Shown here piece after piece: positions 4,617 to 57,224 of a stretch of 64,000 nt of DNA (positions are counted from its first letter, which is position 1; each line of letters begins with the position of its first letter). Where the stretch lies: NCBI GenBank assembly GCA_002269645.1, contig NIVC01002902.1, positions 1 to 64,000 on the forward strand, read 5' to 3'. Below the pieces are notes generated by a model. The model had not been told where the DNA came from. It was given only the letters and a program-made list of their open reading frames with translations, and made no database searches. A program made the position numbers and the translations under genes. Source of the stretch: Macrostomum lignano. Lineage: Eukaryota.

Positions 4617-4637
4617 ACGAAGATGTTATCAATGCGA

Positions 4638-6973: not shown

Positions 6974-6981
6974 GTCTGTTA

Positions 6982-8995: not shown

Positions 8996-9099
8996 GTAGT
9001 AGTAGTATGTTATAAGGGGTTGAGTCATCCAGCGAGCTGGCGCGCAATGCGCCCGAGCAATAAGTGTGGCGCAACCCCTTATAACATACTACTACTACT
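8996..9099. repeat. Terminal 27-bp perfect inverted repeat with (AGT)n/(ACT)n ends
   Basis: 8996-9022 GTAGTAGTAGTATGTTATAAGGGGTTG is the exact reverse complement of 9072-9098. Confidence 0.92.
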
Positions 9100-10859
9100 G
9101 AGCTGCCAGCGGGAGGCCGAGAGGCTTCGAGCCGCCGCTGCGTGGAAGAAATCCAGGCCCGCTTTGCTGACTTGTCTGTGAGTAACCAATACCTCTCAAC
9201 AGCATCAGCCGGTGTTTCGCCATCCTTGTTCTTCAAGCTGAACATTTCGGCTCCGATTTGGTCAAAAATGAACTGAAGAGAGTCGACTGGCTGATGCTCA
9301 GCGGCCAAATGGACGGCCGTGTCACCGTCTTTGTCAGGAACTGTGAGACAGTCGCTGCCGAGCTCCTTCACCAGCCACTTCAGCATTGAATTGTCAGACT
9401 TCTCAGCAGCAAAGTGAAATGCTGTTCTATCCAACAATCCCTTCAGCCGAAAGCAGTCAGTTCCGATCTGTCTCTTGATCCACTCCAGCGACTCGATGCC
9501 CTGATGCTTAGCGGCCAAATGGACGGCCGTGTCACCGCCGTTGTCAGGAACTGTGAGACAGTCGCTGCCGAGCTCCTTTACCAGCCACTTCAAATTTGAA
9601 CTGTCAGACTTCTTAGCAGCAATGTGAAATGCTGTTCAATCCCTCCATCCCTTCAGCCGAAAGCAGTCAGTTCCGATCTGTCTCTTGATCCACTCCAACG
9701 ACTCGATGCCCTGATGCTGAGCGGCCCAATGGACGGCCGTGTCACTGAGTTTGTCAGGAACTGTGAGACAGTCGCTGCCGACCTCCATTACCAGCCACTT
9801 CAGATTTGAATTGTCAGACTTCTTAGCAGCAATGTGAAATGCTGTTCTATCCTTCCACCCTCCCTTCAGCCGAAAGCAGTCAGTTCCGATCTGTCTCTTG
9901 ATCCACTCCAGCGACTCGATGCCCTGATGCTGAGCGGCCAAATGGACGGCCGTGTCACCGAGACTGTCAGGAACTGTGAGACAGTCGCTGCCGAGCTCCT
10001 TCACCAGCCACTTCAGATTTGAATTGTCAGACTTATGAGCAGCAAAGTGAAATGCTGTTCTATCCCTAAATCCCTTCAGCCGAAAGCAGTCAGTTCCGAT
10101 CTGTCTCTTGATCCACTTCAGCGACTCGATGCCCTGATGCTGAGCGGCAAAATGGACGGCCGTGTCACTGAGTTTGTCAGGAACTGTGAGACAGTCGCTG
10201 CCGAGCTCCTTCACCAGCCACTTCAGATTTGAATTGTCAGACTTCTCAGCAGCAAAGTGAAATGCTGTTCTTTCCAACAATCCTCCCTTCAGCCGAAAGC
10301 AGTCAGTTCCGATCTGTCTCTTGATCCACTCCAGCGACTCGATGCCCTGATGCTGAGCGGCAAAATGGACGGCCGTGCCACCGAGTTTGTCAGGAACTGT
10401 GAGACAGTCGCTGCCGAGCTCCTTCACCAGCCACTTCAGACAAGAGTTGCTTTTTCTGTTCACTGCGGCAAAGTGAGCGACTGTCTTTCCATACTTATTG
10501 GACATTCCCAAGCAGCTCCTGCCTCCCTTCTCTTTAATCAGCTCCATCCAAGACTCGTCCTGATGCTTGGCAGCCAAGTGCACTGGAGTCTCACCATCAT
10601 CCCTATAATTTCCAATTGTCAGACAGTCGGGTCCGAATCTGTCAATCAGCAGCTCCAGGCACGACGAACTCACCGGCTTGCAGGTCACGTGATGGGCCAG
10701 CGGCATTTTGCGAAGCTCTTCAAGGGGAAAGTCTTGCTTGTCGAACCCGCCCACCTCCAGCTCAATGTTGCTGCCGACCTCACCGCACAGTCGCTGCAGC
10801 TCCTCGCTGTCTCCAGCCTCCAGCGCCGCTCTCAGCTTCTGCTCTATCTGTGTTGCCAT
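9100..10859 (-). pseudogene. Ankyrin-repeat gene with tandem two-repeat units, one in-frame stop, 3'-truncated by the viral terminus
   Basis: ORFs 9636-10859 and 8925-9593 are in the same frame, separated by TGA at 9638-9636 where other units have AGA (Arg). TAxHxAA repeats lie in near-identical 207-210 nt units. Homology to the paralog at 25.6 kb stops at about 9098. Confidence 0.85.
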
Positions 10860-13499: not shown

Positions 13500-14840
13500 T
13501 TGCCTCCATCTGCTAATTGCCCTGCTCGCACCCTGCTCTCTCCACCGCGCCGCGCTCTGTCGTCCGACATGAACCTTGCCGCCTGGGAGCCGCTGCTTCT
13601 GGGTGACCAAGACGAAGATTTTCTTCGCAGCGGCCTTAGCTACGGCTTTCGGCTCATCAATAGATCGCCGCCTTTTCTTGCCCGCTCCGCCAACTACCGT
13701 TCGGCCTTGGACCAAGCCAAGCAGGTTGGTGAACAGCTCGCCGAGGAGCTCCGTCTCGGCCGCTTGCAGCTCGCCAATGGCCCTGTCATGGTGAACGCCA
13801 TCGGGGCGATTCCAAAGTCTGACGGCAGTGTCCGGGTCATTCATGACCTTTCTAGACCTTCGGGGTCCTCCGTCAACGACAGCTATGAGCAGGAAAAGGG
13901 GCTGCGCTTCGCCTCTGTCCAAGACCTGACCCGCTATCTTCGCCCAAACTCGTTTATCGGCAAAATCGACCTCAAGCAGGCCTATCGTTCCGTCGGTATT
14001 CACCCTGACGACCAGGTGCTCACGGGCCTCAGCTGGCGGTTCTCTGCCGACAGCGATGACTCGGTGCTCGTTGACACTCGGTTGCCCTTTGGTGCTCGAG
14101 CGTCATGTGAGATTTTCCATCGCTTATCGGCCTGCATCAAGCGCCACATGTTCAGCATTGGCTTCACAGCTACCGTCAACTACTTGGACGACTGGGCAGT
14201 CGCCGGTGATACTGAAGAAGCGGCTCAGGAGGCCTTCAATTATCTGGTTGATCTGCTGCAGAACTTAGGCTTCGACATCAACTGGCAGAAGACCGTGGCT
14301 CCAGCTCAACACGTTGTGTTTCTCGGCGTGCTGGTTGACACTGTGAACGGCACCCTGTCACTTCCAAGCAACAAGAAAGACGACATTCGGAAACTGCTGA
14401 ACGATTGCCTGTCACGTGACGTTGTTAAACTGAAGCAGCTCGAAAAACTGGCCGGTAAGTTGTGCTGGCTCAGCCAGATCAACAGGCTGTTGCGTCCTTT
14501 CCTGCGCCCGCTCTTCGACATCCTCAGCTGCAGAATGGACACCCGGCTGCCATCTGAGCTTCGCAACCTCTTCCTCTGGTGGCTGCGCGTCGTGAGTTCT
14601 CTGCCGCCGACGGTCATTCGCCCCGTTTTCGTCAACTTGTGGCCATCGAATCTGATAGCAGTTGCGAGGGTGCTGCTGGCATCGTCTTTGGCAGCGAATT
14701 CAGTGACTGGACGTACTTCAGCTGGGAGAAGGACTTTGAGAGCAAGTTCCGCGACCTTCACATCAACCACAAAGAGGCGCTGGCTCCGCTGCTTACCATC
14801 CTGCGCTTCCGCGAGCAGCTTAGGAACAGCCGCGTGGTGA
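13500..14840 (+). CDS. Reverse transcriptase (DIRS/Ngaro type)
   Basis: VRVIHDLS, KIDLKQAYRSV, LPFGARAS, YLDD, FLGVLVDT. Confidence 0.93.
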   Translation: MPPSANCPARTLLSPPRRALSSDMNLAAWEPLLLGDQDEDFLRSGLSYGFRLINRSPPFLARSANYRSALDQAKQVGEQLAEELRLGRLQLANGPVMVNAIGAIPKSDGSVRVIHDLSRPSGSSVNDSYEQEKGLRFASVQDLTRYLRPNSFIGKIDLKQAYRSVGIHPDDQVLTGLSWRFSADSDDSVLVDTRLPFGARASCEIFHRLSACIKRHMFSIGFTATVNYLDDWAVAGDTEEAAQEAFNYLVDLLQNLGFDINWQKTVAPAQHVVFLGVLVDTVNGTLSLPSNKKDDIRKLLNDCLSRDVVKLKQLEKLAGKLCWLSQINRLLRPFLRPLFDILSCRMDTRLPSELRNLFLWWLRVVSSLPPTVIRPVFVNLWPSNLIAVARVLLASSLAANSVTGRTSAGRRTLRASSATFTSTTKRRWLRCLPSCASASSLGTAAW

Positions 14841-15202
14841 TTTACTCGGACAGCACTGCTGCCGTCGGCATGGTCAATAAGCTGTCCTGTCGGCATCCTC
14901 TGCTCATTCGCATCTATCAGACCGTTGCTCTCGTGTGCCTCACGTCGGGAATTCAGCTCCAGGCGTTCCACCTTCCTGGTCAGATGCAGCTGCTGAGCGA
15001 CTCCGCTTCTAGAATGGGGGGCTCGAGCAGAGAGCTCATTAATTTTTGCTGCCGTCTTTACGGCTCTTTATGCATTTGTCCTTTCGAATTTGCTTCCCAC
15101 ACCATTTCTGCCGTGTCTCGCACCGCTCTTCATTCGCAGGTCGCAGCCGCGCTCCGCTCCGCTCCACCGTGTCTGTGTCCGCTCTGTGCCGCCTGTCACT
15201 AG
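14579..15202 (+). CDS. RNase H domain of the same pol (offset by -1)
   Basis: IESDSS, HINHKEALA, VIYSDSTAAV, LSDSASR. Confidence 0.85.
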   Translation: MAARREFSAADGHSPRFRQLVAIESDSSCEGAAGIVFGSEFSDWTYFSWEKDFESKFRDLHINHKEALAPLLTILRFREQLRNSRVVIYSDSTAAVGMVNKLSCRHPLLIRIYQTVALVCLTSGIQLQAFHLPGQMQLLSDSASRMGGSSRELINFCCRLYGSLCICPFEFASHTISAVSRTALHSQVAAALRSAPPCLCPLCAACH

Positions 15203-16133
15203 CGCCTAGTTCCAGGAAGTCCTATGCGAGCCGCTTACAAGTCTGGAACGAATTCTGCCGGCAGCGTCGAGTTCCCGCGACCGCCGCCTCCGAGTCTGAT
15301 GTCTGCCAATTTGTCTCGTTCCTGTTACAACGTGGACCGGCGTCCTACTCCAGTGTGCAGTCAAGCCTCAGCGCGGTGTCTTACCTACATAGGGCTTCCG
15401 CGTCACCAGACCCGACCAAGGGCAGCGCTCGCCTGGCTCTCGTGTGTCGCGGGCTCGGCGTCTTCTGAGCCGGCAGCCTCGGCGTGCGACGCCGCTGAAG
15501 CCCAGCCACCTCCGCCTGCTTTGCAGCTCCACCGAGCTACGTCATTCGCTGCCGCCCCGTCTGCTGGCCGCCTTCAAGGCAGCATTGCTGGTGGCCTGGT
15601 GGGGAGTCCTTAGGCTCGGCGAGCTCTTACCATCCACCGCTGCGGACGCTCTTCCCCGGAGCTGCCTATCAGCGTGCCCCGGTGGTCTGCGGCTGGTGCT
15701 CAACAGGTCAAAGACAAACCAATTCAAGGAGCGGCAACTGGAATTATTTCTGCCGCAGGCCTCTGAATGCCTGCTTATCTGTCCCGCTTCCGCACTAGCA
15801 ACTCATCTGCGCGAGAATCAAATCTACGGACCGCAGCAGCCCCTGTTTTCTGTCCTAGGCAGCCGCGGCCGGACTCTCTTGTCTGCCGCTATGTTCATCC
15901 GGCTCCTAAAGCGGGGCATGTCTATGTGCGGCTTTGGCGAGTGCGGCTTCTCGGGTCACAGTCTGCGTAGAGGCGGGGCCACCGCTGCCTTTCAGTCAGG
16001 CCTCTCAATCGCCGACATCCGTTGCATGGGCGACTGGCGTTCAGACTGCGTCTTTCGGTATTTCTCTGATGAGGCGTCATTTGCCCGCCGTCGGGCAGCA
16101 GCTCGGCAGGTCGCTGCCTGCCTGGCCTCTTGA
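15046..16133 (+). CDS. Tyrosine recombinase (N-terminal part 15046-15468 and catalytic part 15444-16133, offset by -1)
   Basis: Catalytic set is complete: LRLGEL (R), RSKTNQ (K), GHSLRRG (HxxR), GDW (W), FRY (Y). Confidence 0.9.
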
Positions 16134-21267: not shown

Positions 21268-23014
21268 CCCTATGAAAATTGGCCCGAATTTTCACCCTTC
21301 TCTTCGCCCGAAATCGTCAGCCCTTTGCGGGTGTAAAAATTTTCGGGCTACTGGCCCGGAATCGTTACGAAAAGTTAGTTTTTCGAGCAAGCAAAGTTCG
21401 GCAAGCAAACTTCCCGCAAGCAAACGTCGTACTCCCCAGTCAACTGATTGTATAATCGTACTTTTTTTAAATAATAAACAATGTATTGTTGAATCCTTAA
21501 ACCTGGGATTTTTTTATCCCTAATAGCACAAAAAACCTGCCGGGAACTCAGTTGACTGCGACTGAAAATACTATACATGTACCACTTTAATTGTTTCTAG
21601 TTGATTTGGTACGTTACAAGTTTATTTAAAGTGTATAAAAATTGACGTCCCAATAAATTGTACGCATGGGCTTCATGTGTAGGCTTTAATCTCCCTTTTC
21701 GCACCTAGTTTCCTACTTGTGTAGCTATATTTAAATCCTTAACCACTTCGCGCCCAAGCTTGGTTCTGTAAGATGGCTTAAAAGCCCAAAGGCCTGCAGA
21801 GCAGTCCATAGACAAATTTGTCTTTTTTGCTGAATCGAGTGCACACCCTAGAAGCCCAGACGTAAAGTATATCACATAGTTTTTCAGCTAGCTCCTGTTC
21901 AAACCTTCCTACCCACAAATGGCTTTTACGCGGCCGAATAGGACAGCTAAAAGTGACGCCTTGCGTAGACTGGGACTCGATTCCGATTCGGAAGACGCTT
22001 TATCAAGCAATGACTCGACGGTTTTTGAGTCAGAAACAGAGTCGGAAGGCATGGATCCAGAAATTGATCAGAGCCAAGATGAGGCGACCGCGGAATGGGT
22101 TGAAGTAACCCCTGGAAATGACAACTCGTTTGACCACGACGGGGTGCCGGTATTCCGAGGGTTTTCGACCATCAATCTAAGCACTGGTCTACCAGAAAAT
22201 CCAGACGAAAGTATGAAATAATTTTTATCAATCTTCCTGACTGAAGAGTTTCTCACCACCGTCTTGTCACATGGACCAATGAGCGAATGTGGTTGGCAGT
22301 CAGGGAGTTCCAGCAGGAGAGTGCAGAAAATGGCGAGGATCAGAGCGAGAGTTGTTGTTGAGCTTAGCCGCGAAGTGCTGGGCGAAGGATACCACATATA
22401 CACGGACGACTCCCTGCAACGGAAGCCCAGACTCGCCCAAGCAAACGATTCCGAATTTGAAACCTGACGTTCCAGCTAAGAAGACAGTATTTTGCTGCGG
22501 CCAATGTCCCGGAAATCCTGGTCTCTGTCCAGATCCATGCTAATTCATCCACGCTTTATTTCCCCTTTAACATTTCTCATTTGAGTGAAAACACAATAGA
22601 AATGCACAATGGACGTCTTTAAATCAGTCATGGCCTGCACAGCAGGCCATACTGGGCACTTGCTTTAGTGATTGGGAGATGGTTTTTGATGCCATAGACA
22701 TTTTTCAATCTCTGGGTTTCTGGGCCGTTTCGGTATGGCCTGCAGTGCAGGCCTTTGGCTTCCAAATGGTTAATCAGCATCGTCACGTCAAAAGTCCCTC
22801 AATCCAGAACACGCTTTTAGAAAAAACGGGCTAGAGACCCGAACGTCTGGGTTTCTTCTTTCCCCGCTTTTTGGGCCCGATTTAGTTTCAACCGTTTTGT
22901 CGGCGTTCTTTTCGGGTGAATTGACCACTTTTTAGTTTTCACCCGAAAAATTAAAAGTTCCGGGCCCAATTTCGTGTGTTTCTGGGCGAAAATTCGGGCC
23001 AATTTTTCATAGAG
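21268..23014. mobile_element. MITE-like DNA transposon carrying a nested piggyBac
   Basis: Terminal inverted repeats CCCTATGAAAATTGGCCCGAATTTTC (21268) and GAAAATTCGGGCCAATTTTTCATAGAG (ends 23014). No clear TSD. Confidence 0.6.
21743..22769 (+). mobile_element. Internally deleted piggyBac element
   Basis: TTAA on both sides (21739-42 and 22770-73); ends CCACTT / AAATGG; subterminal inverted AAGCC(C)AAAGGCCTGCA. Transposase remnants: acidic N-terminus (21919-22221), GYHIYTDD, and C-terminal CCGQCPGNPGLCPDPC. Confidence 0.8.
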
Positions 23015-23321
23015 TTTACACTCCTAATTACATTTTTGCATGTTATTAGGGGTTCAATTTTTTATTCAATCAATTTCGCTGCTTTTTACTTACACGACGT
23101 ACTATTTTATTATTTTTATGCATTTTCCGAAATCAGTGAACGAATTATTTTCTGTGTATACTGAAATGCATCTTAATGCAATGTCCATATCAATAGCGAA
23201 CTACCTTACTTATTGTCAATACTTAGTAGCTCGTAGTAATGAACGATTCACTACTACTGACCAAGAGTTTTAGATAATTTATATGATTAATCATCATTGT
23301 GCAGTACTTTGCAATCCGAAT

Positions 23322-24570
23322 CATGCATATAGACATACCAACCAGACACAAATAGACACAAACGGACACACAGACATACCAACCAGACACAAATAGACAC
23401 AAACGGACACACAGACATACCAAACAGAAACAAATAGACACAAACGGACACACAGACATACCAAACAGAAACAAAAAGACACAAACGGACACACAGACAT
23501 ACAGAAACTTACGAACAGACACAAACAGACACAGACATACAGAAACATACAAACAGACACAGACAGACACACACACATACAGAAACATACAAACAGACAC
23601 AGACAGACACACACACATACAGAAACATACAAACAGACACAGACAGACACACACAAATACAGAAACATACAAACAGACACAAACAGACACACAAATACAG
23701 AAACATACAAACAGACACAAACAGACACAGACATACAGAAACATACAAACAGACACAAACAGACACAGACATACAGAAACATACAAACAGTCACAGACAG
23801 ACACAGACATACAGAAACATACAAACAGTCACAGACAGACACAGACATACAGAAACATGCAAACAGACACAAACAGACACAGACATACAGAAACATACAA
23901 ACAGACACAAATAGACACACACACATACAGAAACATACAAACAGACACAAACAGACACAGACATACAGAAACATACAAACAGTCACAGACAGACACAGAC
24001 ATACAGAAACATACAAACAGACACAAACAGACACAGGCATACAGAAACATACAAACAGACACAAACAGACACAGACATACAGAAACATACAAACAGACAC
24101 AAACATAAAGAAACATACAAACAGACACAAACAGACACAGACATACAGAAACTTACAAACAGACACAAACATAAAGAAACATACAAACAGACACAAGCAG
24201 ACACAGACATACAGAAACATACAAACAGACACAAACAGACACAGACATACAGAAACATACAAACAGTCACAGACAGACACACACATACAGAAACATACAA
24301 ACAGACACAAACAGACACAGGCATACAGAAACATACAAACAGACACAAACAGACACAGACATACAGAAACATACAAACAGACACAAACAGACACAGACAT
24401 ATAGAAACATGCAAACAGACACAAACAGACACAGACATACAAAAACTTACAAACAGACACAAACATAAAGAAACATACAAACAGACACAAGCAGACACAG
24501 ACAGACACAGACATACAGAAACATACAAACAGACACAAACAGACACAGACAGACATGGACAGATACACAC
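23322..24570. repeat. CA-rich minisatellite (ACAGACACAAACAGACACAGACATACAGAAACATACAA)
   Basis: Long tandem array; the ORFs over it are artefacts. Confidence 0.92.
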
Positions 24571-24884
24571 ATAGAGCTAGGCATGCGTACATCGAAAGTT
24601 ATTCCGATGAAAAGGGAGAGGAATAAACGGAGAGTGAAAGGAGAATGAAGGCCCAAAAAAAATTAAACCCAACCCGATGGGAAATCTGGAGGGATGTTGG
24701 AGCCTCACTTTTTGGCGGTAGCCTCTAATTACTTTTTGGTTGCACTAAACCAACGGGAGGCTAGAGGCTAGGTTAGAGGCTCGACTCTTGGACGGCGCAG
24801 CCTCTAAAAATGACCCAGTTAGAGGCTCGCTGTTTGAGGCTCGTATTGGAGGCTGGATTAGAGGCTGGCGATTCGATGCTTAAT

Positions 24885-25412
24885 TAGAGGCTTAATTAGA
24901 GGCTCAATTAGAGGCTCAATTAGAGGCTCAATTAGAGGCTCAATTAGAGGCTCAATTAGAGGCTCAATTAGAGGAGGTTGGTGGCGCCATGGAGAGGTTG
25001 GGGCGCCATGAGGAGGTTGGGGGCTCCATGGGGAGGTTGGGGCGCCATGAGGAGGTTGGGGGCGCCATGGGGCGGTTGGGGGCGCCATGGGGAGGTTGGG
25101 GGCGCCATGAGGAGGTTGGGGGCGCCATGGGGCGGTTGGGGGCGCCATGGGGAGGTTGGGGGCGCCATGGGGAGATTGGAGGCGCCATGGGGAGGTTGGG
25201 GCGCCATGAGAAGATTGGGGGCGCCATGGGGAGGTTGGGGGCGCCATTGGGAGGTTGGGGGCGCCATGGGGCGGTTGGGGGCGCCATGAAGAGGTTGGAG
25301 GCGCCAAGGGAAGGTTGGGGGCGCCATGGGGAGGTTGGGGCGCCATGAGGAGATTGGGGGCACCATGGGGAGGTTGGGGGCGCCATGGGGAGATTAGGGG
25401 CGCCATGAGGAG
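24885..25412. repeat. Adjacent 12-bp (AATTAGAGGCTC) and 20-21-bp (GGGGCGCCATGGGGAGGTTG) tandem arrays
   Basis: Tandem copies read directly from the sequence. Confidence 0.9.
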
Positions 25413-25552: not shown

Positions 25553-26600
25553 TCACCCAGCTGAGGCGGCAGTCGGCGCTGATCTGCCAGCGGGAGGCCG
25601 AGAGGCTTCGAGCCGCCGCTGCGTGGAGGAAATCCAGGCCCGCTTTGCTGACCGGTCTGTGACAAACAGCCGACTCTCAACAGCATCAGCCGGTGTTTCG
25701 CCATCCTTGTTCTTCAAGCTGAACATTTCGGCTCCGATTTGGTCAAAAATGAACTGAAGAGAGTCGACTGGCTGATGCTGAGCGGCCAAATGGACGGCCG
25801 TGTCACCGAATAAATTTTCAGGAACTGTGGGACAGTCGCTGCCGAGCTCCTTCACCAGCCACTTCAGATTTGAATTGTCAGACTTCTGAGCAGTAAAGTG
25901 AAATGCTGTTATATCCAAAAATCCCTTCAGCCGAAAGCAGTCAGTTCCGATCTGTCTCTTGATCCACTCCAGCGACTCGATGCCCTGATGCTGAGCAGCA
26001 AAATGGACGGCCGTGTCACCGTATTTGTCAGAAACTGTTAGACAGTCGCTGCCGAGCTCCTTCACCAGCCACTTCAGACAAGAGTTGTTTTTTTGTTCAT
26101 AGCGGCAAAGTGAGCGACTGACTGTTCCCATCTACTGAAAATTCTCAAGCAGCCTCTGCCTCCCTTCTCTTTAACTCCCTAGCTTCATCCATGACTCGTC
26201 CTGATGCTGGGCAGCCAAGTGCACTGGAGTCTCGCCCCTCTCATTTCCATGTGTCAGACAGTCGGTTCCGAATCTGTCAATCAGCGACTCCAGGCACGAC
26301 GAGCTCACCGGCTTGCAGGCATGAGCATTCTCGGGCGCCATGAAGTGCCAGGTGCCTTTTGGCTGGTTGCCTGCGCTCAGACTGCAGGTTTTGACGGGTT
26401 CACCAACGTCGCCTCATCATTTCTCACCGAGTCTCCTCAGGCAGTCCGACCGCAGTCGGCCCATGCGGCTGGACGCTCTGTCGAGCTTGTGGGCGGGGAC
26501 GCGGAGCTGCAGCGCTGTAGGAAGAGTTTTACGAGTGAGCCCGTTAAACATGTCTGGGTCGCCAAGGCGGCACTTAAACTCTGCTAATGCTTCGTGTATA
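25553..26600 (-). pseudogene. Paralog of the 9.1-10.9 kb ankyrin gene, shorter array, frameshifted
   Basis: High nucleotide identity to 9100-9450 and 10430-10690; different N-terminal segment; probable splice donor GTGAGT near 25557. Confidence 0.75.
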
Positions 26601-26887: not shown

Positions 26888-27646
26888 TTGACAACAACGG
26901 GCTACAAGCAGGTTGGCTTCTCCCCTTCCGTGCCTCCTGAGCACGTCTCCGAGGAGTCCTTGACTTCGCTGTCCGAGGGTGATGGACACTGCCTTAAGTC
27001 CATAGAGGAAGGCTGTACATGTCAGATACAATTAGTAATGCTTGCACCTGCAACCAATGCTCCGCTCCAGACTGTCTCACAGCTGGTCATTCAAGGTGAC
27101 TTTGACTAGGTGCAGCGGCTGGCAACGAGTCAGCCCGTGACGACAACCGACCAAGCCAACCGGACCGTTCTCATGCTAGCAGCCGACTCGCCAAGTATTC
27201 CAGCTCAGGCTGAAAAGTGCATTTTGTACTTAATTAAACTTGGCGCCGATCCCAAAGCGATTGACGAGTCGGGCGACACGGCTGCGCATTTGGCAGCCCG
27301 ACAGGACAACGTGCGGCTTCTGGCGCTGATGCCTTTCAATGCTAAGTGGCTGCAGAACAGCCAAGGCCTGACACCGCTGATGGAGGCGGCTCAAACCGGA
27401 AGCTGGAGCTGCGCCAAGCACCTGCTGCATCTGCTGCGGCAGTGGAGTCACATTGAGTGGACAGAGACCGACAAGAAGGAAGCTGGGAGTTCGGACTCGC
27501 CTAAGCAGAATGGCGGCAAAGGACCCGAGAAGCCGAAGAACGAACGAAAACGCCTGCTTGGCCTGAAGGACCTCAACGGTCTGATAGCTGTAGAAATTGC
27601 GACGCGCAATGGGCATGAAGAGCTGGCTGGGTACATTGAGAGGTGA
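26888..27646 (+). pseudogene. Ankyrin-repeat exon with in-frame TAG (27107-27109)
   Basis: ORFs 26888-27109 and 27110-27646 share a frame; repeats RTVLMLAA, DTAAHLAA, LTPLMEAA; ends at donor AG|GTGAGT near 27642. Confidence 0.65.
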
Positions 27647-28838
27647 GTAGCTTGAGTAGCAGGCTCTTGAAACTGTACTATTAATGGTATTTAGTTCTGT
27701 TGACTTAAATCGAGCTGCATAATGCATGGCAGCCAATAAAAACGTTTTCATCCTACGGATCCTGCAGAATCATGCAGAAAAGTAGAAGTTTACATTCAAA
27801 TTGTCTTAAATTGTAGGGAGATGCGCTTGGTGGTGACTATCGGTGGTCTAATTTTGGGCCTGACATCTAAGGTAAGCCGAAAAATGATTGAAAAAACGAT
27901 AAAAAATTTTTAATTAAACAACGTGCCACTATTTAAATCGGAAACTTTCGAACTAGATTAAGAATCCAGCCTTGCAGGCGCGCTTACGAGGCGAACTTGT
28001 AGCGATCGTAATGCTTTCGGTTAAGTCAACTATATTGCTACTTGTTGAATAGCGGGCACTGCTTCTGTAAGATAACGGCATTATGCTACACTCGCACGTT
28101 TATGATCGCAAACATGTTGATTTACAGTCACCCGCAAACGTTCTGCTTTAAATACTCTGACAGTAGTGTGTAATGTTAGTTTCCTACTGATAACGCAGTG
28201 GTCTTGACATTTGAGGAGAGTTCAGAAAAGTCAAAGCAACGTCGCAAAACAACTGGATATAAATCGTTTATTTTTTATTGTAAGTCGACTTTTCAGTACC
28301 AATAAGTGCGTGGGATACTTACGGCGACTCTTAGGGCTCTTGGTAAGGGATTAAAAATCTTAATCAAGAAGGTAAAAAAATCTAAAGCTACAAGATTAGG
28401 ACAAAAGGGAAAATGAAAACAAGAGAACAAGGATCTTCATTGATCGCATTCATTTAAACAGGTTGTATAATATCTAGCTAACTCTTAAGTGCATTAAAAC
28501 AAATACACAGAGTGTAATAAAATTATAGTTAATAGCTCGTAGAAGTGTGTATACACAATAAGTCTATAAATTAATAAAACATATTTTAACTTCCTAATTT
28601 TTTAAGTAGATAAATTGGTAGAGCTCTGTGAATTGTGACGAGTTCCGTCAGCGCACTACTTTTGGGTTTCTTTTGTTCACTTTTATTACATCATCTTCGA
28701 AATCGTTAACGAAATCTATGATGTCTAAAATGTGGTGGAAAATTGTCGACCTTATTGATTTACCTACTTGCAGTAGTAGGTTTAGGTTTAATCATCATCA
28801 TCATAAAACAAGTGATTGTTAGCAGCATTGAAATCTTC

Positions 28839-31800
28839 TCAAATCAAATGTTGATACCTTGAAAGAATTCTCAGCTCCACTTCATCAGCGTCGTCACGTT
28901 GAGAGATTTCCTTGAGCCAGTTAACAGCTTGGAAGTCGCCTGGTGTCAGTTCCAGTCGCAGGCACTGCAACAGGGCCTCAAAGTTCATATAGTAAAAGTT
29001 CTCAAAGTTTTCCATCGGCAACGGGAAGCATTCAGAAATGAAGTCGTAAAAATCACTTTTCACTCGAAACTGAAATTTATGTCGCTGTCCGAATTTGAAG
29101 CAAAACTTCCACGCCGAATCCTGGGTTTCTAAATGCCTCCACACGATGCTTTCAGTTGCCTCAGCAGCTGGCCTGTCACTGGGCCATGCAAGACAATGGC
29201 AAACCTGGTGAGCTCGGCAGTCCGTCAGAAACTCCACGGCGGTGCTCAGGTCGTCAAACATAAGGCAGCTCAAAGCTTTGAGACTCTCCCGGGCTGATCG
29301 AGCGCAATATGGCAACCTTTCTAACTGCTCAAACAGAGTAGCATGAGCCTCGCCACCTTCATAGTTAACTTCAAAGAGACTAAGTAAAGATTCCCTTACT
29401 AAATTATACACTTTATGATACGCAGGCTCGTTCGACTTTTGATCCGGGTTCCACAAAAGAATAGGTAGTATGAGGAACGGATGAAAGTAAAACATGCCTT
29501 CAGCACTGACGGGTTTCAGATATTCATTGAAGCTCATCAGCCGCTGGGGCAAGTGGTCGATCACGTCTCGAAGAACTTGCACGATCTCTTCAGAACTGCT
29601 GCGATCGGCACCCTTCAGATACAAAGCTGCATCGCTCAAGAAGAAATGCTCCATTATTCGGCCATCTGTATTGTCAGCGGAACGACTCGTCTCGACACTG
29701 TCCAACAGCATCTGCACCGATCGACGGATGAGTGTCATAAGGTTCTCCGGCTTCCACTGCTCTTCTGGTGTCTCTTCAAGCATTCGGAACGTGACCGTCT
29801 TTGCGTGATACGCCTTCAGACCGTGAACTCTGCGACCGATCACCTTCTTGACCAGAAACTTGAGCGTGATGAACAGCTCGCCCTGCAGATTCGTGAGACT
29901 CCGTAGCAGGCGTCTCTCTAAGAAGGTGGTGCTCACTCGGAGCTGCTTGCCGGCTTGTCCAGGAGGTGCCGCGTGAACCACGTGACAGGGCAAGGCTTCG
30001 AGCTCGCTTGTGAGAGACTGCAGCACCGTTTGTGGGATGCTGGATTTGGCCAGTCGATGAGGCTGCAGCGGCCCGATTGGAGGATAGCAGCAGAGGCGAC
30101 AGGCGCTCACGCGGTCCACAGCGGGTCGGAGAGTCGAACCGTTCTCTGGCCGGGCTGGGTTTGACGCTAAAGTTGGGAAGCAGAATTACGAGTATAATAT
30201 AAAGTCCTTTCTAGATGACCAAAATACTAAATTTAAGCTCATAATCATTGAACCCTCACCAAATCCTTCACATTCTATATGCCCGTTGTAGTAACTTGTT
30301 GTTTGTCGACTGTTAGCATTCGGGCATTGGCAGAAGCGTCTCACATGATACAATCGGCCAGGCATTAGCTGAACTACGTCAATGTCGGATTCAAAATCAG
30401 TTCTACCGTCCATACGTGTTAGACTGTTGCCCCAGCCCTCGGAGTAGCTTCCCACTACGAAGACCTCATTGTCATTCAGTCGGTTTCTTAGAATTGTTTC
30501 CAGTACGTCGGCCATTGCACTCTGCATTGCGGCTCTGGTTTCGGAAAATCCCGACTTGGTTAGTGCTGCGTGTAGCTGCAGACTGAGTTCTGTGTCTTCG
30601 GGTTGTGGTCTGAAGTTTAGTCAAGTTAGACATTTCTCCTTAGTATTCTTCTTGTACATGTGATAAAAATTACAGCTCAAATACCTGTTTCATAAAATGG
30701 AACAAAACTTACCCATACTTAGTAAGGTTTTCAAACTGTTCAAAACGTTTACTAGATAAGTTCGCTTCTGGCTGAAGAACAGGTGGAATATCAGTACTGT
30801 CTTTTATTACTTCAGAGTCTGCAGCGCAATAATCGAAATTTTCTTGAGCCCTTCTGAGTCGTCTAGCTACAGGCAGATGGTTTTGAGCGAGGGACAACTC
30901 CAAAGGCGTCTTTCCATCAAGTGCGTGTGGCCTGACCGTGCATCTGGCTTCAAGCAGCAGCTCAACTACTCGATCATGACCTGACTTTGCGGCAATGTGC
31001 AGCGGCGACTTGCCACTCTTGGTTCGAATATCGGAATTTGCTTTAGAGCTCAGAAGCAAGTTGGTAATGTCAGTGTGACCCTGTTGGCTAGATATCAAAA
31101 GAGGCGAATATCCCTCTCCGACTTCTTGAAGATCTACTTCGGCTTGGCCTGTCAGGAGGGAAGACACAACTCCTACGTGACCCCAGTGCACTGCCAAGTG
31201 GAGCGGCGACTGTCCAGTATCCCTCTGGACGTCGACATTGGCCTGGGCTCCGATAAGCAAGTCAACAGTTTCCTGGTGGTTCTCTTGCGCTGCAATGTGC
31301 AAATGTGCTAGAGAAAATTTCCAGAGGACATTCACATCTGCTTGCGACTTTATCAGAGCTTTGACGACTTCGCTATGGCCAAACTGTGCGGCCATGTATA
31401 AAGGCGAGAAGCCTCTTTCGTCTTGCAGTTCAACATCGGCCTCTGCCTTCAATAACTCATTGACAACTTTTTCGTGTCCTTTTTGGCAGGCAATGTATAA
31501 AGGTGACTGACCGGTAAGCACTCGTGTATTAATGTTTGCTTGTGCTTTTATGAGTGTCTTAACAGATTCTTGGAGACCATCTTGCGAGGCAATGTAGAGT
31601 GGTGTTGCCTGCTCCACAACTCCGAGATTTAGGTCAGCTTGAGCCGTAATAAGCAAATTAAGCACGTTGATGTGATTTTCTTGCGTTGCCATGTAAGCGG
31701 CAGTAGCTCCTGACCGAGATCGAAAATTTACATCGGCGTGAGCTGAAACCAATGCTTGCAATAACTTGCAATCGCCATGCTTTGAGACTAAATGGATTGG

Positions 31801-33015
31801 AGCGAACCCCTGATCGTCCAGAATATCTAGATTTGAGCGTGCTCTAATTAGGAGGCTGCTCAATTCGCAAGAGGCTCTGTCTAGCGCAGCATGAAGAGCA
31901 GTTTCTCCTGATAATCCTGGAGTATTCGGATCTGCTTGCGAATCGATAAGAAGCTCAATAATGTGACGGCTTTCAGCTTGAGTGGCAAGAATGAGAGGTG
32001 TCATTGACTGTTCAGTCCGACAATCCAAGTTTGCCATTGCCTTAATTAATATCTGTACCACCTGTCTATGACCATTCACGGTTGCTGCATGCAAAGGTGA
32101 TTTTTGGTCACAAGTTTGTGCGTCCGGATCAGCTTGCGCGTTGAGCAGAAAGGTCAAAAGTTTTTGATTGCCCTTTTCTGCCGAAATGAAAAGCGCGGAC
32201 CTACCATTTCGAGTCTGTAAATTGACGTCAGCTTGCGCTAGTACAAGTGCTTTGGCTATGTGATACTGACCAGCTTTTGCCGCAATAAAGAGCGCTGTTG
32301 TCTCGTCTTTAGAGAGAAGATCGACATCAGCTTGAGCTGCAATCAGCATCTGAAGCACTTTCAAATAACCCTCTTGTGACGCCATGAAAATCGGTGACCA
32401 GCCCTCGTCGTCAGGCAAATTCACATCTGCATGTGCGTCCAGCAGCTGTCTGACAATTCCACGGTGATTGAACTGTACAGCAGCAAGCAGGGGTGTCTCA
32501 CCAGACTCTGTTTGCAGGTTCACATCGACACCGGCCTTGATTAATTTCCTAACGAATTCGACTGAGCCATCCTGGCAGGCGATGTACAGCGGCGAACAAC
32601 CGTTGCTTTGTCTGAGATTCAAGTCGGCTTGAGACCGAGCCAGATGGTACACAACATCGGGCCAATTGTCTTGAGCGGCAATGTGCATCGGGCTCGCCCC
32701 TTGAAACTGCTGGATATCCAAATCGGCCTGAGCCCTGATTAGCAGATCCACCACTTTGAGGTGGCCATTCTGCACCGCAAAGAATAACGGCGATTCGTTC
32801 CTGCTTGTCAACAAGTTGACATCCGCCTGCGCTTTGATGAGCCTGTCAACGACTGCGTAGCGACCGAGATAGCAGGCTAGGTGCAGTGGAGTTGTACGGC
32901 CTGAGCAATATCTGATCTCCTCATTTAGCTCTATTAGCTTCTGTGAAAGGTGCTTATCAACTATCTGCAAATTCTCCGTCTTGATTGCGTCCAGAAATTC
33001 TTTTTTACCTTGCAT
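28839..33015 (-). CDS. Ankyrin-repeat (about 21) - Mab-21/cGAS-like nucleotidyltransferase fusion (cGLR-like), 1326 aa, copy A
   Basis: Exons 33015-30713, 30609-30260 and 30166-28839; GT-AG introns of 103 nt (phase 2) and 93 nt (phase 1) join three track ORFs in frame (3981 nt). NTase motif GSYSEG...SDIDV, third Asp in AVDRVSA, Mab-21 helices LRVSTTFLERRLL and LKAYHAKTVTF. Confidence 0.9.
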
Positions 33016-33436
33016 GTCAGCGTTTTTTGCAAATTATTAGCAAAGTAAGACCCTCTTTGAGAATTGCGATGGCTAAAGAGCTGTAGACAGTAAGCGAGCC
33101 ATGATAGTCTATTTGTACTGCATCGCTGCAAGTAATGCACTGGACTAGTTGAATTTTTAAAAAGCGCTCTGGTAAATGCACACGAATGCCAGTAGTTTTT
33201 TTTCTCCCTGCAATTTCTGTCTTTTTGGCGTACACTTCTGTACGCAGAAACGCGAGTGGCCTAAGATAGAGAGAAAAATGTACGGCGGGAGTACCTTGTT
33301 CGCGGCATTATAATTATGAAGCACTAATAGTACCATTATTTCAGGCTTAGCTCTGGAGGCCACACTTCTTTCATAGATGCTTGGCGCAGATCAAGTTGAG
33401 GAATTTAGAAGCAAATTTTAAGAAAAGGCAAACAAT
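33016..33436. promoter_or_regulatory. Putative bidirectional promoter between the two ANK-cGLR genes
   Basis: 421 bp separate two divergent ATGs. Position-based inference only. Confidence 0.55.
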
Positions 33437-36400
33437 ATGGAGATTGAGTACGAGTATCTCCAGGCCGTACTATCAGGAAATCTAGTAGTTGTCGATGCCT
33501 TTATAACTGCTGGAGTTCCCGTGGACAAAATGTTCTACATCGGCAACAACTCTGGAGCCGCCCTTCATTTGGCCTCGTCAACTGGTCAAGTTGCAGTGGT
33601 CGACCGGCTTCTGAGAGCTCAAGCCGATATCAATCGACGTCAAGAAGCCGGCGCCACGCCGCTGTTCCTGGCCGCCGAGTTTGGGCACGCGAACGTCGCC
33701 AAGCTGCTGCTTCAAAACGGTGCAAATGCCGACCTGCCGCGCTGGGACTCAGGCGACGCGCCGCTGCATATCGCATGCGACAAGGGCCACACGGCGGTAG
33801 TAGATCGACTCATTGCCGCTGGAGCCGACCTCAATCCTGTACAGGAGGCAGGCTGCACCCCCATCTACATGGCAGCGCAAAATGGCCACTCCAAGATTGT
33901 CGCTCGGCTGCTCAGAGCCGGAGTCGACCTTGACTGGCGTTGTCTAACCAACGGGAATTCTGCTCTGCTCGCAGCCACTCAGGAAGGTCACGCTCGCGTT
34001 GTCGCTAGCCTTATTCAAGCGGCAGCCAACGTGAATCTTACTAACAAAAAAGGTGAAACAGCGTTGCACTTTGCTGCTCAAAATGGACAACTCAAGATTA
34101 CTCAGCTACTTCTCAAGAGCCGCGCCGATGCCAACGTCAAAGCAAGCAACGGCTGCGAACCGATTCACACCGCGGCTCAGAACGGAAATCTGGCAATAGT
34201 GCAAGCCCTGATCGCAGCCCAGGCGGACGTCAACACTGTCGAGGTGGATGGTGCGTCTCCAGTTTACATCGCCTCACAGAATGGCCATCAAAGAGTTATC
34301 AAAACTCTGATTGAATCGCAGGCTAACATTGATCATCAGCGCAATGACGGCGTGTCAACGATTTACATTGCCGCTCAAGAGGGTCACAGCGAAGTGGCCA
34401 GGCTGCTAGTGCGCTCTGGAGCAGCAAAAGTGGATGCACAAACTAGGACAGGAGAGACTCCACTGCACATTACTGCTCAGCGAGGCGACCAAGCGACTCT
34501 ATACGAGCTTCTTCAAGCAGCTCAAGGCAGTCCAGTGAATTCGAAGCAGAACGATGGTTGCTCGCCGATTTTTCTGGCAGCGCAGTTCGGTCATTGGAAA
34601 GCCATTGAGCGTCTTATTCACGCTGGTGCCGATGTCAACACGACAAGAGCGACTACAGGACAGACACCTCTGCACGCCGCAGCTGAGAATGGACATCCAG
34701 AAGCGACTAAATCGCTGGTCCGATGCTTTGCTGATGTCACTGCAACAGACAGGGATGGCCAGACACCTTTAAACTTGGCTAGAAAATTTAAGCACAAAAC
34801 AGTTGCTGAACTTCTTGAGAAGGCCCTATCTGACAGGGATAATTCAGAAGATGCTGGGACTGTGAAAGACGAGCCGATGCCGTCACAAGTTGATAAAAGC
34901 AGCTCCAGCTTGAGGTAATATAACTTCAATAAAGCCGCACAGTAAATATCCTTTACTCTGAAAATTCACATTAAGTTTCACTTTCAATTTCTCGTACGTA
35001 TTTCAGCGAAGAAGAATTCAGTCAGCAACTGCACAGTTCCCTCCAGCAGGCTGGCTTTGAGCAGACCCGAGCTGCCCTTCAGAGCTCGTGTGCAGACGTC
35101 CTGCAGCGCATACTAAGACAACGCCTACGCAGCGAAGAAGTTTTTGTTGTTGGCAGCTACTCGGAAGGCTGGGGAAACAGCCTCAGCCATTTGGATGGCA
35201 GAACGGACCCAGAATCCGACATAGACGTGATGCAGCTCATACCAGGAAGGATTTATCACCTGAAAGATGTCTGCAGGTGCACTGATCCTGACTCTGAACT
35301 AGTTGTGGAATATGACAACGGTCATATAATCTGTAAAGGATATGGTAAGCATATTTTTATTTCTCTAATCTCGAAACTCTAAAGCTCGAAGTTATAATAG
35401 TCTTCAGTAATTTACCAACCTCAATCAGCTTCCAGCCCAGCCCGGCCAGAGAACGGTTCGACTCTCCGACCCGCCGTGGACCGCGTGAGCGCCTGTCGCC
35501 TCTGCTGCTATCCTCCAATCGGGCCGCTGCAGCCTCATCGACTGGCCAAATCCAGCATCCCACAACCGGTGCTACAGTCTCTCACAAGCGAGCTCGAAGC
35601 CTTGCCCTGTCACGTGGTTCACGCGGCACCTCCTGGACAAGCCGGCAAGCAGCTCCGAGTGAGCACCACCTTCTTAGAGAGACGCCTGCTACGGAGTCTC
35701 ACGAATCTGCAGGGCGAGCTGTTCATCACGCTCAAGTTTCTGGTCAAGAAGGTGATCGGTCGCAGAGTTCACGGTCTGAAGGCGTATCACGCAAAGACGG
35801 TCACGTTCCGAATGCTTGAAGAGACACCAGAAGAGCAGTGGAAGCCGGAGAACCTTATGACACTCATCCGTCGATCGGTGCAGATGCTGTTGGACAGTGT
35901 CGAGACGAGTCGTTCCGCTGACAATACAGATGGCCGAATAATGGAGCATTTCTTCTTGAGCGATGCAGCTTTGTATCTGAAGGGTGCCGATCGCAGCAGT
36001 TTTGAAGAGATCGTGCAAGTTCTTCGAGACGTGATCGACCACTTGCCCCAGCTTCTGATGAGCTTCAAAAACAGCCTGTACCAAATTGGGTCAAACAATT
36101 TGTTTCATTTTCACCCATTTCTTATTCTCCCAGAGATCGATCCAAAGTTTTCAACAGGGCTGCACTTCCGCGATTATTACAGCATCTATGACATCGTAAG
36201 AGATTCGTTTGAATCTCTGGTCGTGCCTGACTTTAGCCGTGAATTCGAAGCCTCCCTGGTGAAGAAGATTGGCAGGTTGCCAGACTGTGCTAGATCAGCT
36301 CGCGAGAGCCTCAGGGCCCTGGTCTGCCTGAAATTTAACGATACAGTTGCCGCCTCTGATGTTTTGTTGGACTGCAACGGTCACATAGTAAGCAGAGGCA

Positions 36401-36864
36401 TTAAGGAATTTGCTTCTAGACCCGCAGAAGGGTCAGGGGAGTCGGCAGTATTCAACCAGCTATGCAACAGCGACCTAGCCTGGAGATTCAGCTTCATGTT
36501 CCTAAACCGGCCGGATCTATCCAGCCTCTTACCGGATCATCTGGCCACCTGGTTTCCCCTGCGAATGGAGAACTACGACGCGTACTACTATATAAGCTTT
36601 GATTGCCTGCTGCTTTGTCTGAGTTGCGAGCTGCGAGTCAAAAGCGCCGAGGCTCAGAACGCTTGGCTTCTGGGTTTGCTTCTGCGCGACGAAGCAGACA
36701 TTCAGGAACTGCTCACTGCCATGCGATACTGCTCAGATCACAGTCTGGCTCTATCGGTGATTAGAAAATTTCAAACAAGCATTCAAAGCCACGAGCTAAC
36801 GTCTAAAGAACTGATAAGATTTCAACAGGAGCGTCTTCTAGCTGATTTACCACAGGCCTTCTAG
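33437..36864 (+). CDS. Ankyrin-repeat (about 13) - Mab-21/cGAS-like nucleotidyltransferase fusion (cGLR-like), 1083 aa, copy B
   Basis: Exons 33437-34914, 35007-35344 and 35429-36864; GT-AG introns of 92 nt (phase 2) and 84 nt (phase 1); 3252 nt in frame. Same GSYSEG...SDIDV and AVDRVSA motifs as copy A. Confidence 0.9.
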
Positions 36865-38787: not shown

Positions 38788-39071
<284 letters not shown>

Positions 39072-39292: not shown

Positions 39293-40470
39293 CTGGGGTG
39301 CTGCGAACAGGCAAACTCTGGCCTCTGCCTCTCCTTATGTCCCTTGGATCCTTAGAAACTTCGATCTTCTCTTCTGTTTCCTCTCCTCTCTCTCGTCTCT
39401 GTCTCTTCTCTCTCTCCTCTATCCCCTATTCTCTCGTCTATTCCCTCTCCCCTCTATTCTTTTATCCCTCCTCTCCTCCCTCCTCTCTACTCTGTACTCT
39501 CTCCTCTCTCTCCTTCTCCTCTCATCTCTTCTCTTCTTTCCTCTCTCCTCTCTCCTCTCTTCTATCGTCTCTTCCCTCACCTCTCTTCTCTCTCGTCTTT
39601 GCTCTCTTATCTATCTCTTCTTTCTCTTATTTTATCTTTTCTCTCTTCTCTCTTCTCATTCTTTCTGCATGTTCTCTCCTCTCTCTTTCCCTCTCTCTCT
39701 CCTCTCTCTCTCCCTCTCTCTCCTCTCATCTCTCTGCTCTCTCCTGTCCCATCTCTCTTTCTCCTCTAATCTCTCCCCTGTTTCCTCTACTCTCTCGTCC
39801 TTTCTCCTCTTTCCCCTGTCCTCTCGGTTCTCTCCCCTCCCCTCCTCTCTCCTCACTCACTTCTCTCTCCCTTGTCTCCCCTCTCATCTCTTATTTCTAT
39901 CCTTTTTTCTCTCCACTCTCCTCCCATCTCTCGTCTGTTCACTCTCGTCTCTGGTCTCTCATCTCCCCTCTCTCATCTGCCATCTTTACTCTCTTATACT
40001 CGTATGTTTTCTCACCTCTCTCATCTGTACTCTTCTCTTTCCCCTCTTTTGACTCCTCTCTTTCCTTTCTCCTTTTTTCCTTCTCTTCTCTTCCCTCTTC
40101 TATTCTTTCCCTCTCTTGTCTTCTCTCTTCTCTCTTCACTCTCCTCTCTCCTCTCATATATCGCGTTCACTCTCATCTTTGCTCTCTACCCCCTCTCTCT
40201 TCTGTCATCTTTACTCTCCACTCTCCTGTGTACTCTTCTCTTTCCCCTCTACTGAATCCTCTCTTCTTACTCCTCTTCTCTTCCCTCTTCTATACTCTCT
40301 CCCCTCTATTCTCTTCTCTTGTCTCTGCACTCTGCTCTCTCTTCCTTCATCTCTCATCTCTACTCTCTCATCTTTCCTTTCATCTCTCTCATCTCCACAA
40401 TCTCATCTATTTCCTCTCTCCTCTTCTTCCCTTTACTCCATCATCTCTCCTTTCTCCTCTCTTCTTTCTC

Positions 40471-40568
<98 letters not shown>

Positions 40569-40954
40569 TCTTATCTCATCTCTTCTCACTCCTCTCTACC
40601 TCTCTCCCCTCCTATCTCCTCTCTGTTCTCTATTCTCTTCTCACTCTTCTCTACTCTCCTCTCTCATCGATCCTCTGTCTCATCTCTCCCCTCTTCTCTC
40701 TTCCTCTTCTCTCCTCTACTCTTTCCTCTCCCTCCTGTCTCCCCTCCTCTCGCTTCCTCCTCCCATATTCTCTGCTCTCTCCTCGTCCTCACCCCACTCG
40801 TCTCTCCTGTTATCTTATATATTTTCTCTTACCCCCCTCTCGCCCTTCCTCTCTTTCTAATAGTCTATTCCTTTTCTTTTTCACTCTCATCTGGCCCGCA
40901 GCCATGAGTTGGATTCTTTATCTGGCCTTTGAGTAAAAAATCTACCGATCCCTG
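39293..40954 (-). mobile_element. hAT-like MITE with a 1.5-kb internal CT-rich tract
   Basis: End 40893-40954 is homologous to the reverse complement of 62549-62610; the other end GGGGTGCTGCGAAC resembles GGGGTCTGCAAAC. Confidence 0.6.
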
Positions 40955-46894: not shown

Positions 46895-48056
46895 GTCAGA
46901 CAGACACCACACTAAGACAGACAGACACTAAGACAGACTGACACTAAGACAGATTGACACTAAAACTGACTGACACTAAGACAGCCTGACACTAAGACAG
47001 ATTGAGATTAAGACAGACTGACACTAAGGCAGATTGACACTAAGGCAGATTGACGCTAAAACAGACTGACACTAAGAAGGACTGGCACTAAGACAGACTG
47101 ACATTAAGACAGACTGACTCTAAGACAGACTGACACTAAGACAGACTGACACTAAGACAGACTGACATTAAGACAGACTGACACTAAGACAGATTGACAC
47201 TAAGACATACTGACATTAAGACGGACTGACACTAAGGCAGAATGACACTAAGACATACTGACATTAAGACAGACTGACACTAAGGCAGATTGACGCTAAA
47301 ACATTCTGAAACTAAGACAGACTGGCACTAAGGCAGATTGACGCTAAAACATTCTGAAACTAAGACAGACTGGCACTAAGACAGATTGACATTAAGACAG
47401 ACTGACTCTAAGACAGACTGACACTAAGACAGACTGACACTAAGACAGACTGACATTAAGACAGACTGACACTAAGACAGATTGACACTAAGACAGACTG
47501 ACATTAAGACAGACTGACACTAAGACAGATTGACACTAAGACAGATTGACATTAAGACAGACTGACACTAAGGCAGAATGACACTAAGACAGATTGACAT
47601 TAAGACGGACTGACACTAAGGCAGAATGACACTAAGACATACTGACATTAAGACAGACTGACACTAAGGCAGAATGACACTAAGACATACTGACATTAAA
47701 TTAAGACGGACTGACACTAAGGAAGAATGACACTAAGACATACTGACATTAAGACAGACTGACACTAAGACAGATTGACACTAAGACAGACTGACACTAA
47801 GACAGATTGACACTAAGACAGATTGACATTAAGACAGACTGACACTAAGGCAGATTGACGCTAAAACATTCTGAAACTAAGACAGACTGGCACTAAGACA
47901 GACTGACATTAAGACAGACTGACACTAAGACAGATTGACATTAGGACAGACTGACACTTAAACAGACTGACATTAGGACAGACTGACACTAAGACAGATT
48001 TACATTAAGACAGACAGACAAAAAGACAGACCGACACTGAAACAGACATACTGACA
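46895..48056. repeat. 16-bp minisatellite (ACAGACTGACACTAAG)
   Basis: Long tandem array. Confidence 0.93.

Positions 48057-49068: not shown

Positions 49069-57224
<8,156 letters not shown>

Follow-up and report, generated by a model that had tools for sequence, protein, structure and literature searches.

Recurrent gene conversion as the probable source of a near-identical inverted repeat inside two divergent ankyrin–Mab21 genes of Macrostomum lignano

The first 64,000 nucleotides of contig NIVC01002902.1 of the flatworm Macrostomum lignano (assembly GCA_002269645.1), the whole stretch that we analysed and that we call the window, contain two divergently transcribed genes of three exons each, A on the minus strand and B on the plus strand, which encode cGAS-like proteins of the Mab21 fold fused to ankyrin repeats (ANK). 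The third exons of these genes carry the two arms of a near-identical inverted repeat. It is very likely that these arms were produced by recurrent interlocus gene conversion, that is, by ectopic and non-reciprocal exchange between ancient and divergent ANK–Mab21 paralogs. We observe a step in synonymous divergence (dS) between the repeat and its flanks, concerted amino-acid states in the copies of the locus, the recurrence of a homogenised tract in tandem paralogs of the same family, and an excess of GC at third codon positions (GC3). These results bear out one half of an earlier, sequence-only reading of this DNA, according to which gene conversion homogenises the two genes while the ankyrin sensor and the tail diverge; the other half, an invertible switch that would swap receptor domains, fares differently. 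Taken as a whole, we are dealing with an ordinary phenomenon in an interesting gene family.

A repeat search of the window delimits the arms at 29527..30168 in gene A (minus strand) and 35427..36068 in gene B (plus strand), each 642 nt long and separated by a spacer of 5258 nt, and blastn finds these two copies of the repeat in the window and no other. Compared base by base, the arms differ at nine of 642 nt (98.6% identity). The repeat had previously been described as 633 bp long with about six mismatches, and there are indeed exactly six within 29527-30159 and 35436-36068 (at 29541, 29542, 29593, 30021, 30029 and 30120); the remaining three (30160, 30162 and 30165) fall within the first 9 nt of exon 3. 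Mismatches are clustered at the ends of the tract, and the longest perfect run between the arms is 427 nt. When the 474 differences found over 1647 aligned coding nt were permuted, the longest run never exceeded 51 nt in 20,000 permutations. Beyond either end of the arms, identity in 60-nt windows falls at once to the background level, so the edges are sharp: the tract starts at most 10 nt from the acceptor of exon 3 and reaches as far as about codon 213 of that exon.

Arm 1 takes in exon 3 of gene A between roughly codons 3 and 213, a stretch that codes for the strand bearing the putative third catalytic Asp (AVDRVSA), for the remaining nucleotidyltransferase (NTase) core and for the Mab-21_C helices; the Pfam Mab-21_C match lies inside it, and the hhalign alignment to a canonical Mab21 protein covers these residues. 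Arm 2 has the same frame and the same position in exon 3 of gene B. The tract is the C-terminal half of the NTase core plus the Mab-21_C domain, and not the whole enzyme core. The earlier statement that the enzyme core is homogenised holds for the C-terminal half of the core, which lies within the tract, but not for the N-lobe, which carries the GS and DxD motifs and is encoded by exon 2, outside the tract.

The genes around this tract are old. By the Nei-Gojobori method, the proportion of synonymous differences (pS) between A and B amounts to 0.74 for exon 2 and to 0.78 for the tail, whereas dS within the tract is 0.02, with three synonymous and three nonsynonymous differences counted over 206 codons. 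This comparison of dS inside and outside the tract had been proposed as a check on conversion, and its outcome is in favour of it. Nucleotide identity per 60-nt window is 55-73% in exon 2, about 40-50% in intron 2 and 35-70% in the tail; the introns are unalignable, and the ankyrin arrays have 30-33% protein identity and no nucleotide similarity. The strong divergence of exon 2, the introns, the ankyrin arrays and the C-terminal part, already noticed in the sequence-only reading, is therefore confirmed. The N-lobes of A and B are 60% identical in amino acids and their tails about 39%, and some 30 other paralogs are at least as close to them in these parts; A and B are ancient paralogs, not recent duplicates.

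Evidence of exchange also comes from another assembly. M. lignano has three subgenomes that are 1.4-2.4% apart (PMC10733133), and hence multiple copies of the locus. Among the UniProt models derived from a different M. lignano assembly, one is A-type (P0001) and three are B-type (P0011-13): in the N-lobe, P0001 is 99-100% identical to window A, and P0011-13 are equally close to window B. In the tract, window A and window B both have L, N, E and I (ELEALPC; TNLQGELFITLKF), and P0001 and P0011-13 all have S, T, Q and V at the same sites. The latter are the majority states among the other paralogs retrieved, in which Q, V (I in one paralog) and T (I in one paralog) are near-universal and S precedes PC in most. 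Derived states common to both paralogs of one copy are the classical sign that A and B have exchanged sequence since the copies separated. The SSIPQ[T/P]V site is patchy, with T in window A, P0001 and P0011 and P in window B, P0012 and P0013.

The A/B pair is not alone in having this segment homogenised. On contig NIVC01001685.1 (reversed 81950-108028; locus L003), three ANK–Mab21 genes lie in tandem on the same strand, and the 5' segments of their third exons (4839-5947, 14660-15768 and 22489-23545 of that locus) are 95-97% identical over about 1.1 kb. Outside this tract, the N-lobe exons of the three paralogs are 76% identical and their ankyrin regions 65-73%. The tract starts at the same exon-3 acceptor as the A/B tract and its distal end is abrupt, but this end lies at about 1100 nt instead of 642 nt, so the tract does not end at a fixed site. 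With L003, the family has a further conversion cluster, independent of the first. Since its paralogs, tandem and on the same strand, have been homogenised over the same segment, homogenising this part of exon 3 is a habit of the family for which an inverted arrangement is unnecessary. At the control loci L001, L002 and L004, with singleton or convergent paralogs, there is no shared high-identity tract.

Other loci of the family carry inverted repeats as well. In L005 (4791-5828 versus 29285-28247 and 15016-13983) and L006 (895-2735 versus 15265-13424), repeats of 1.0-1.9 kb with 92-97% identity pair truncated minus-strand fragments of core and tail with full genes 8-23 kb away, and L005 has an additional tandem segmental duplication of about 14 kb. 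The ANK–Mab21 family is rich in substrates for ectopic recombination.

The tract is also marked by its base composition. GC3 in the tract is 65.6% in both genes, as compared with 48.5% in the flanks of A (p = 1e-4) and 53.5% in those of B (p = 5e-3). In L003 the tract reaches 75.8% versus 61% (p = 3e-4), with about 75% across the tract of the three genes, and in three singleton paralogs the core has 55.3% versus 56.2% in the flanks (p = 0.76). The pattern is compatible, in this small sample, with long-term GC-biased gene conversion, a process of which we know no description in flatworms. In mammals, GC-biased gene conversion has reportedly been found in the histone and Hsp70 multigene families (Galtier 2003, Kudla et al. 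2004). The likeness is that GC3 is raised specifically in converting segments; the difference is that our evidence consists of two clusters versus three singleton controls.

How the repair proceeds, which way sequence is transferred and why the tract ends where it does are inferred here rather than observed. A break in one copy would be repaired from its partner at a distance of about 5.3 kb, with the sole stretch in which A and B retain enough nucleotide similarity as template; this stretch is the most conserved coding segment of the family. Extension of the heteroduplex would be halted on one side at the AT-rich, unalignable intron 2, and on the other side by the divergence of the family-specific tail. 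A succession of such events, ending at variable points, could then yield the identical centre and leave mismatches at both ends, and GC-biased repair would raise GC3. Drosophila Hsp70Aa/Ab are an example of conversion between adjacent inverted paralogs. More generally, conversion between adjacent paralogs is well documented in either orientation (PMC3966223). The hsp16 and hsp70 pairs of C. elegans, for instance, are close to each other, in opposite orientation and share a sharply bounded near-identical tract, and their copies are more alike within a genome than between genomes (PMC3966223). The difference with these heat-shock pairs is that A and B are homogenised only in an internal part of an exon; elsewhere they are saturated at synonymous sites, and their ankyrin arrays and tails differ, which makes the outcome a mosaic and not two near-identical genes. 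A variant in which conversion is templated by cDNA, as the edge of the tract at an exon boundary might suggest, was considered and rejected: intron 2 is kept in both genes, and the tract stops before exon 2.

Some points weigh against recurrent conversion as we propose it. The test of concerted evolution uses amino-acid states only, taken from gene models of an older, fragmented assembly, and the GC3 contrast is one of two homogenised clusters and three singletons only. Also, the identity of the tract is read from assembled sequence rather than from single reads, and a polishing artefact is remotely possible. Lastly, conversion and crossover share intermediates, so occasional inversions would be compatible with our data.

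This last point leads to the alternative that survives best, in which a crossover between the arms by non-allelic homologous recombination (NAHR) flips the 5.26-kb head segment, with its promoter, ankyrin arrays and N-lobes. One would then expect both linkage phases to occur, whether as a polymorphism of the germline, between subgenomes or among somatic cells, and the arms would owe their identity to these exchanges as a side effect. The sequence-only reading had claimed that a flip would keep both frames, and it was right: a simulated crossover within the arms leaves two open frames, one of 1047 aa with the head of B and the tail of A, and one of 1362 aa with the head of A and the tail of B. 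The arms do hold a 427-nt perfect run, and NAHR can draw on the intermediates that it has in common with conversion. There is also a precedent in human CTRB1-CTRB2, opposite-strand paralogs in which a 16.6-kb inversion swaps promoter and exon 1 (PMC6145291). As in our pair, the human paralogs run in opposite directions and share long identical internal stretches, so that inversion exchanges the 5' parts of the genes; however, theirs is a common inversion polymorphism between genes that are 97% identical overall (PMC6145291), while here the homology is of 642 bp and the inverted allele is unseen. Indeed, the sole other model that reaches the tail, P0001, combines an A N-lobe, the tract and an A tail, which is the parental linkage. 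Arms of 642 bp are short beside the repeats known to drive recurrent inversions, and this weighs against NAHR too. The identity of the arms can be explained without any inversion, since the same segment is homogenised in tandem paralogs, where none is possible. A rare or polymorphic NAHR inversion that keeps both frames is, in our opinion, improbable.

We give even less credit to an artefact of assembly or polishing, in which cross-mapped reads from the paralogs would have made the consensus artificially identical. M. lignano assemblies are certainly difficult and partly chimeric (PMC10733133), and the older gene models for B stop within the tract, suggesting that the repeat troubled the assemblers. 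Yet nine mismatches survive in the tract, its edges coincide with an intron-exon boundary and its GC3 is raised. Also, the models of the independent assembly have identical A and B tracts too, with four residues different, and the GenBank assembly Mlig_3_7 has an analogous 95-97% tract in another cluster. It is therefore very unlikely that polishing created the repeat.

Slightly less tenable still is the idea of a recent duplication with very fast divergence of the flanks, or of constraint at the nucleotide level by an embedded RNA or regulatory element. It is true that no other protein segment of the family is as conserved as the tract. However, synonymous sites are saturated in the flanks and the introns are unalignable, while the synonymous sites of the tract are nearly identical. 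Nucleotide-level constraint is rejected because the singleton paralogs (L001, L002) share only 72-73% of nucleotides with the tract in the homologous segment, other paralogs being at about 72%, and because Rfam gives no family match in the tract. Neither protein- nor nucleotide-level constraint accounts for identical synonymous sites in the tract.

The weakest proposal is the programmed, recombinase-driven invertible switch, which would swap receptor domains on demand as bacterial hsdS shufflons do, and which we find next to impossible to believe: what speaks for it is the likeness to those systems, namely inverted repeats within the coding sequence of two genes and modules that a flip would recombine in frame, but the arms are long stretches of homologous coding sequence instead of short crossover sites, the host is eukaryotic, and a single orientation has been observed, with P0001 in parental linkage. 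In the 25 larger ORFs (open reading frames) of the window that Pfam scans covered, mostly of ≥180 aa, no domain of an integrase, invertase or transposase turned up; the domains in them are ANK, Mab-21_C, Prim-Pol/D5_N/PriCT_2, Endonuclease_7 and RVT_1. A distal tract end that differs between clusters (642 versus about 1100 nt in L003) is unlike a fixed crossover site, mismatches clustered at the tract ends are expected of variable conversion endpoints, and same-strand paralogs are homogenised as well. The shufflon-like switch of the sequence-only reading has thus no positive evidence in its favour, and we know of no programmed recombinase switch in animals outside antigen-receptor loci.

Further copies of the locus were sought in protein collections. 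Exact look-up of the ORFs at 23321-24592 (minus), 33437-34918 (plus) and 25553-26131 (minus) gave no recorded match. The best homology search result was 40% identity for the ankyrin exon of A, for which a near-identical annotated protein was not found; for the ankyrin ORF at 27110-27646 it was 57% over the full query, with one match of 72% over 36% of it and nothing near-identical. A search of a representative library added to the M. lignano paralogs, but yielded no other copy of A or B type that includes a tail. The model P0001 has an order of its own when compared with window positions 27230-33015: an A-type gene is followed by the antisense of 27751-27230 and by a second A-type ankyrin array, N-lobe and tract. 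This order implies a tandem second A-like copy downstream that is missing from the window; either subgenomes or assemblies differ in copy number, or the model was mis-joined.

The identification of A and B, made from the letters of the DNA, as head-to-head genes of three exons for ankyrin-fused, cGAS-like Mab21 proteins proved correct. Pfam recognises strong ankyrin repeats in both proteins. The match to Mab-21_C (PF20266) is borderline in both (24.4 bits in A and 24.1 bits in B, for a cut-off of 24.1), and 13 of 20 family members match it at E <= 0.01, the best with an E of 1.5e-09. Pfam Mab-21 (PF03281) gave no match, and phmmer found none for the Mab21 part of B among PDB sequences. The family profile, however, matches cGAS chains in PDB with E about 1e-3 and, in a library of 1.8 billion proteins, reaches proteins with both Pfam Mab-21 and Mab-21_C. 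Against a protein with PF03281 and PF20266, hhalign gives a probability of 96.8% over residues 115-262 of the Mab21 part of B, which correspond to the tract. An AlphaFold2 (AF2) model of the same part has a predicted local distance difference test score (pLDDT) of 82 and a predicted template modelling score (pTM) of 0.84, and its top 39 Foldseek matches in PDB are all cGAS, MAB21L1, MB21D2 or Sp-cGLR1, with E down to 6e-7, a probability of 1.00 and a template modelling (TM, target) score of 0.43-0.56. The link of the Mab21 part of B to cGAS comes from the profile and from this fold comparison only. A and B are ANK-fused cGAS-like proteins of the Mab21 fold.

Residues G50-S51, D72-I73-D74 and D124 (numbering of the Mab21 part of B) are invariant or nearly so in family alignments. 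The GS loop and DxD are encoded in exon 2, and the third Asp, D124, stands at the start of the tract and is aligned with the LRPAxD strand of the canonical Mab21 protein. We regard G50-S51, D72/D74 and D124 as putative catalytic motifs, whose roles are assigned by position in the sequence and not by superposition, and A and B presumably have an enzymatic function. The homologs found, 33 in number, are all from M. lignano, and the ANK–Mab21 expansion of this species comprises 84 cluster representatives at E <= 1e-30, the top ones having been inspected. Fusion to ankyrin repeats has already been noted for some cGAS-like receptors (cGLRs; Li et al. 2023, PMC9980059). The M. lignano proteins resemble these in having an N-terminal ankyrin array joined to an NTase domain of the Mab21/cGAS fold, and in forming a large, lineage-specific and highly variable family. 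They differ in an extra C-terminal extension of about 200 aa, and are known here from sequence and predicted fold. This extension has no Pfam match and is common to all ANK–Mab21 family members.

Gene A runs on the minus strand from an ATG at 33015. Its exon 1 (30713..33015) holds a long ankyrin-repeat array in a 768-aa ORF and is followed by the donor GT; exon 2 (30260..30609), strongly diverged from exon 2 of B, encodes the N-lobe of the NTase with the GS motif VGSYSEGWGN and the DxD motif SDIDV; and exon 3 (28839..30166, stop included) contains the tract, 30168-29527, and the diverged tail, 29526-28839. The position of its acceptor AG is conserved in the family. A spacer of 421 bp (33016..33436) separates the divergent start codons and may contain a shared bidirectional promoter. 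Gene B runs on the plus strand from an ATG at 33437, with an exon 1 (33437..34914) that holds an ankyrin-repeat array in a 493-aa ORF, an exon 2 (35007..35344) for the NTase N-lobe with GS and DxD motifs, and an exon 3 (35429..36864, stop included) with the tract, 35427-36068, and the diverged tail, 36069-36864. All introns of both genes are GT-AG, 84-103 nt long and about 31% GC. The exon-3 acceptor has an identical position in A, B and three paralogs on another contig, and the exon-3 junctions of A and B are used by the UniProt-derived models P0001 and P0012, respectively.

The window contains other elements. A low-GC block (34-39%) at 2101-7713 has ORFs matching Prim-Pol (weakly), PriCT_2 + D5_N and Endonuclease VII in Pfam, with the PriCT_2 + D5_N primase-helicase at 2841-4616 on the plus strand and the Endonuclease VII at 4715-6973 on the minus strand, and has the look of a mobile element, virus-like or of the Polinton/Maverick kind, that has entered the genome of the flatworm. 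At 13500-14840 (plus strand), an ORF with RVT_1 and a weak RVT_thumb match, set in a GC-rich stretch (50-59%) from 14 to 20 kb, is a retroelement remnant. Small ankyrin-repeat genes without Mab21 fusion are duplicated in direct orientation, at 8925-10859 and 25553-26319 (9098-9592 versus 25579-26076, 93%; 10134-10684 versus 25772-26319, 89%), with internal repeats of about 210 bp at 9291-10491. The locus is embedded in satellites and microsatellites, at 23339-24555, 24971-25412, 38789-39071, 39381-40734, 46909-48047 and 52845-54190, made of a 38-bp unit ×32, a 20/139-bp unit, (TAGA)n, 1.3 kb of (CT)-rich sequence and a 16-bp unit ×71; the tandem array at about 53 kb is about 1.3 kb long. Many long 'ORFs' in the satellite regions are translated repeats.

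Besides being products of conversion, the arms might be a substrate for homologous crossover, and both orientations of the 5.26-kb head would then be present in subgenomes, wild populations or somatic cells. We hold this to be a long shot, slightly more so than the inversion discussed above. If it were true, two genes would give four combinations of ankyrin sensor and tail around a shared catalytic module, and this would be a recombination-based diversification of innate immune receptors, in which conversion keeps the 'hinge' identical and the swap stays possible. If the arms mediate inversions, the locus would serve as a model of how modules are shuffled in a receptor of innate immunity, although nothing here shows it.

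Under recurrent conversion, the A/B pair is a clean textbook case of partial gene conversion, which explains why ancient paralogs look 'recent' over 642 bp. This calls for caution with phylogenies, dS-based dating and read mapping in the ANK–Mab21 family, and the GC3 signal may serve as a footprint of GC-biased conversion in a flatworm. Between these neighbours, the Mab21 part that is homologous to canonical cGAS/Mab21 proteins is kept uniform, and the ankyrin arrays and C-terminal extensions diverge freely. The expansion of the surrounding ANK-cGLR-like family is more noteworthy than the repeat itself: this large set of M. lignano ANK–Mab21 genes lies in a phylum reported to have mostly lost cGLRs.

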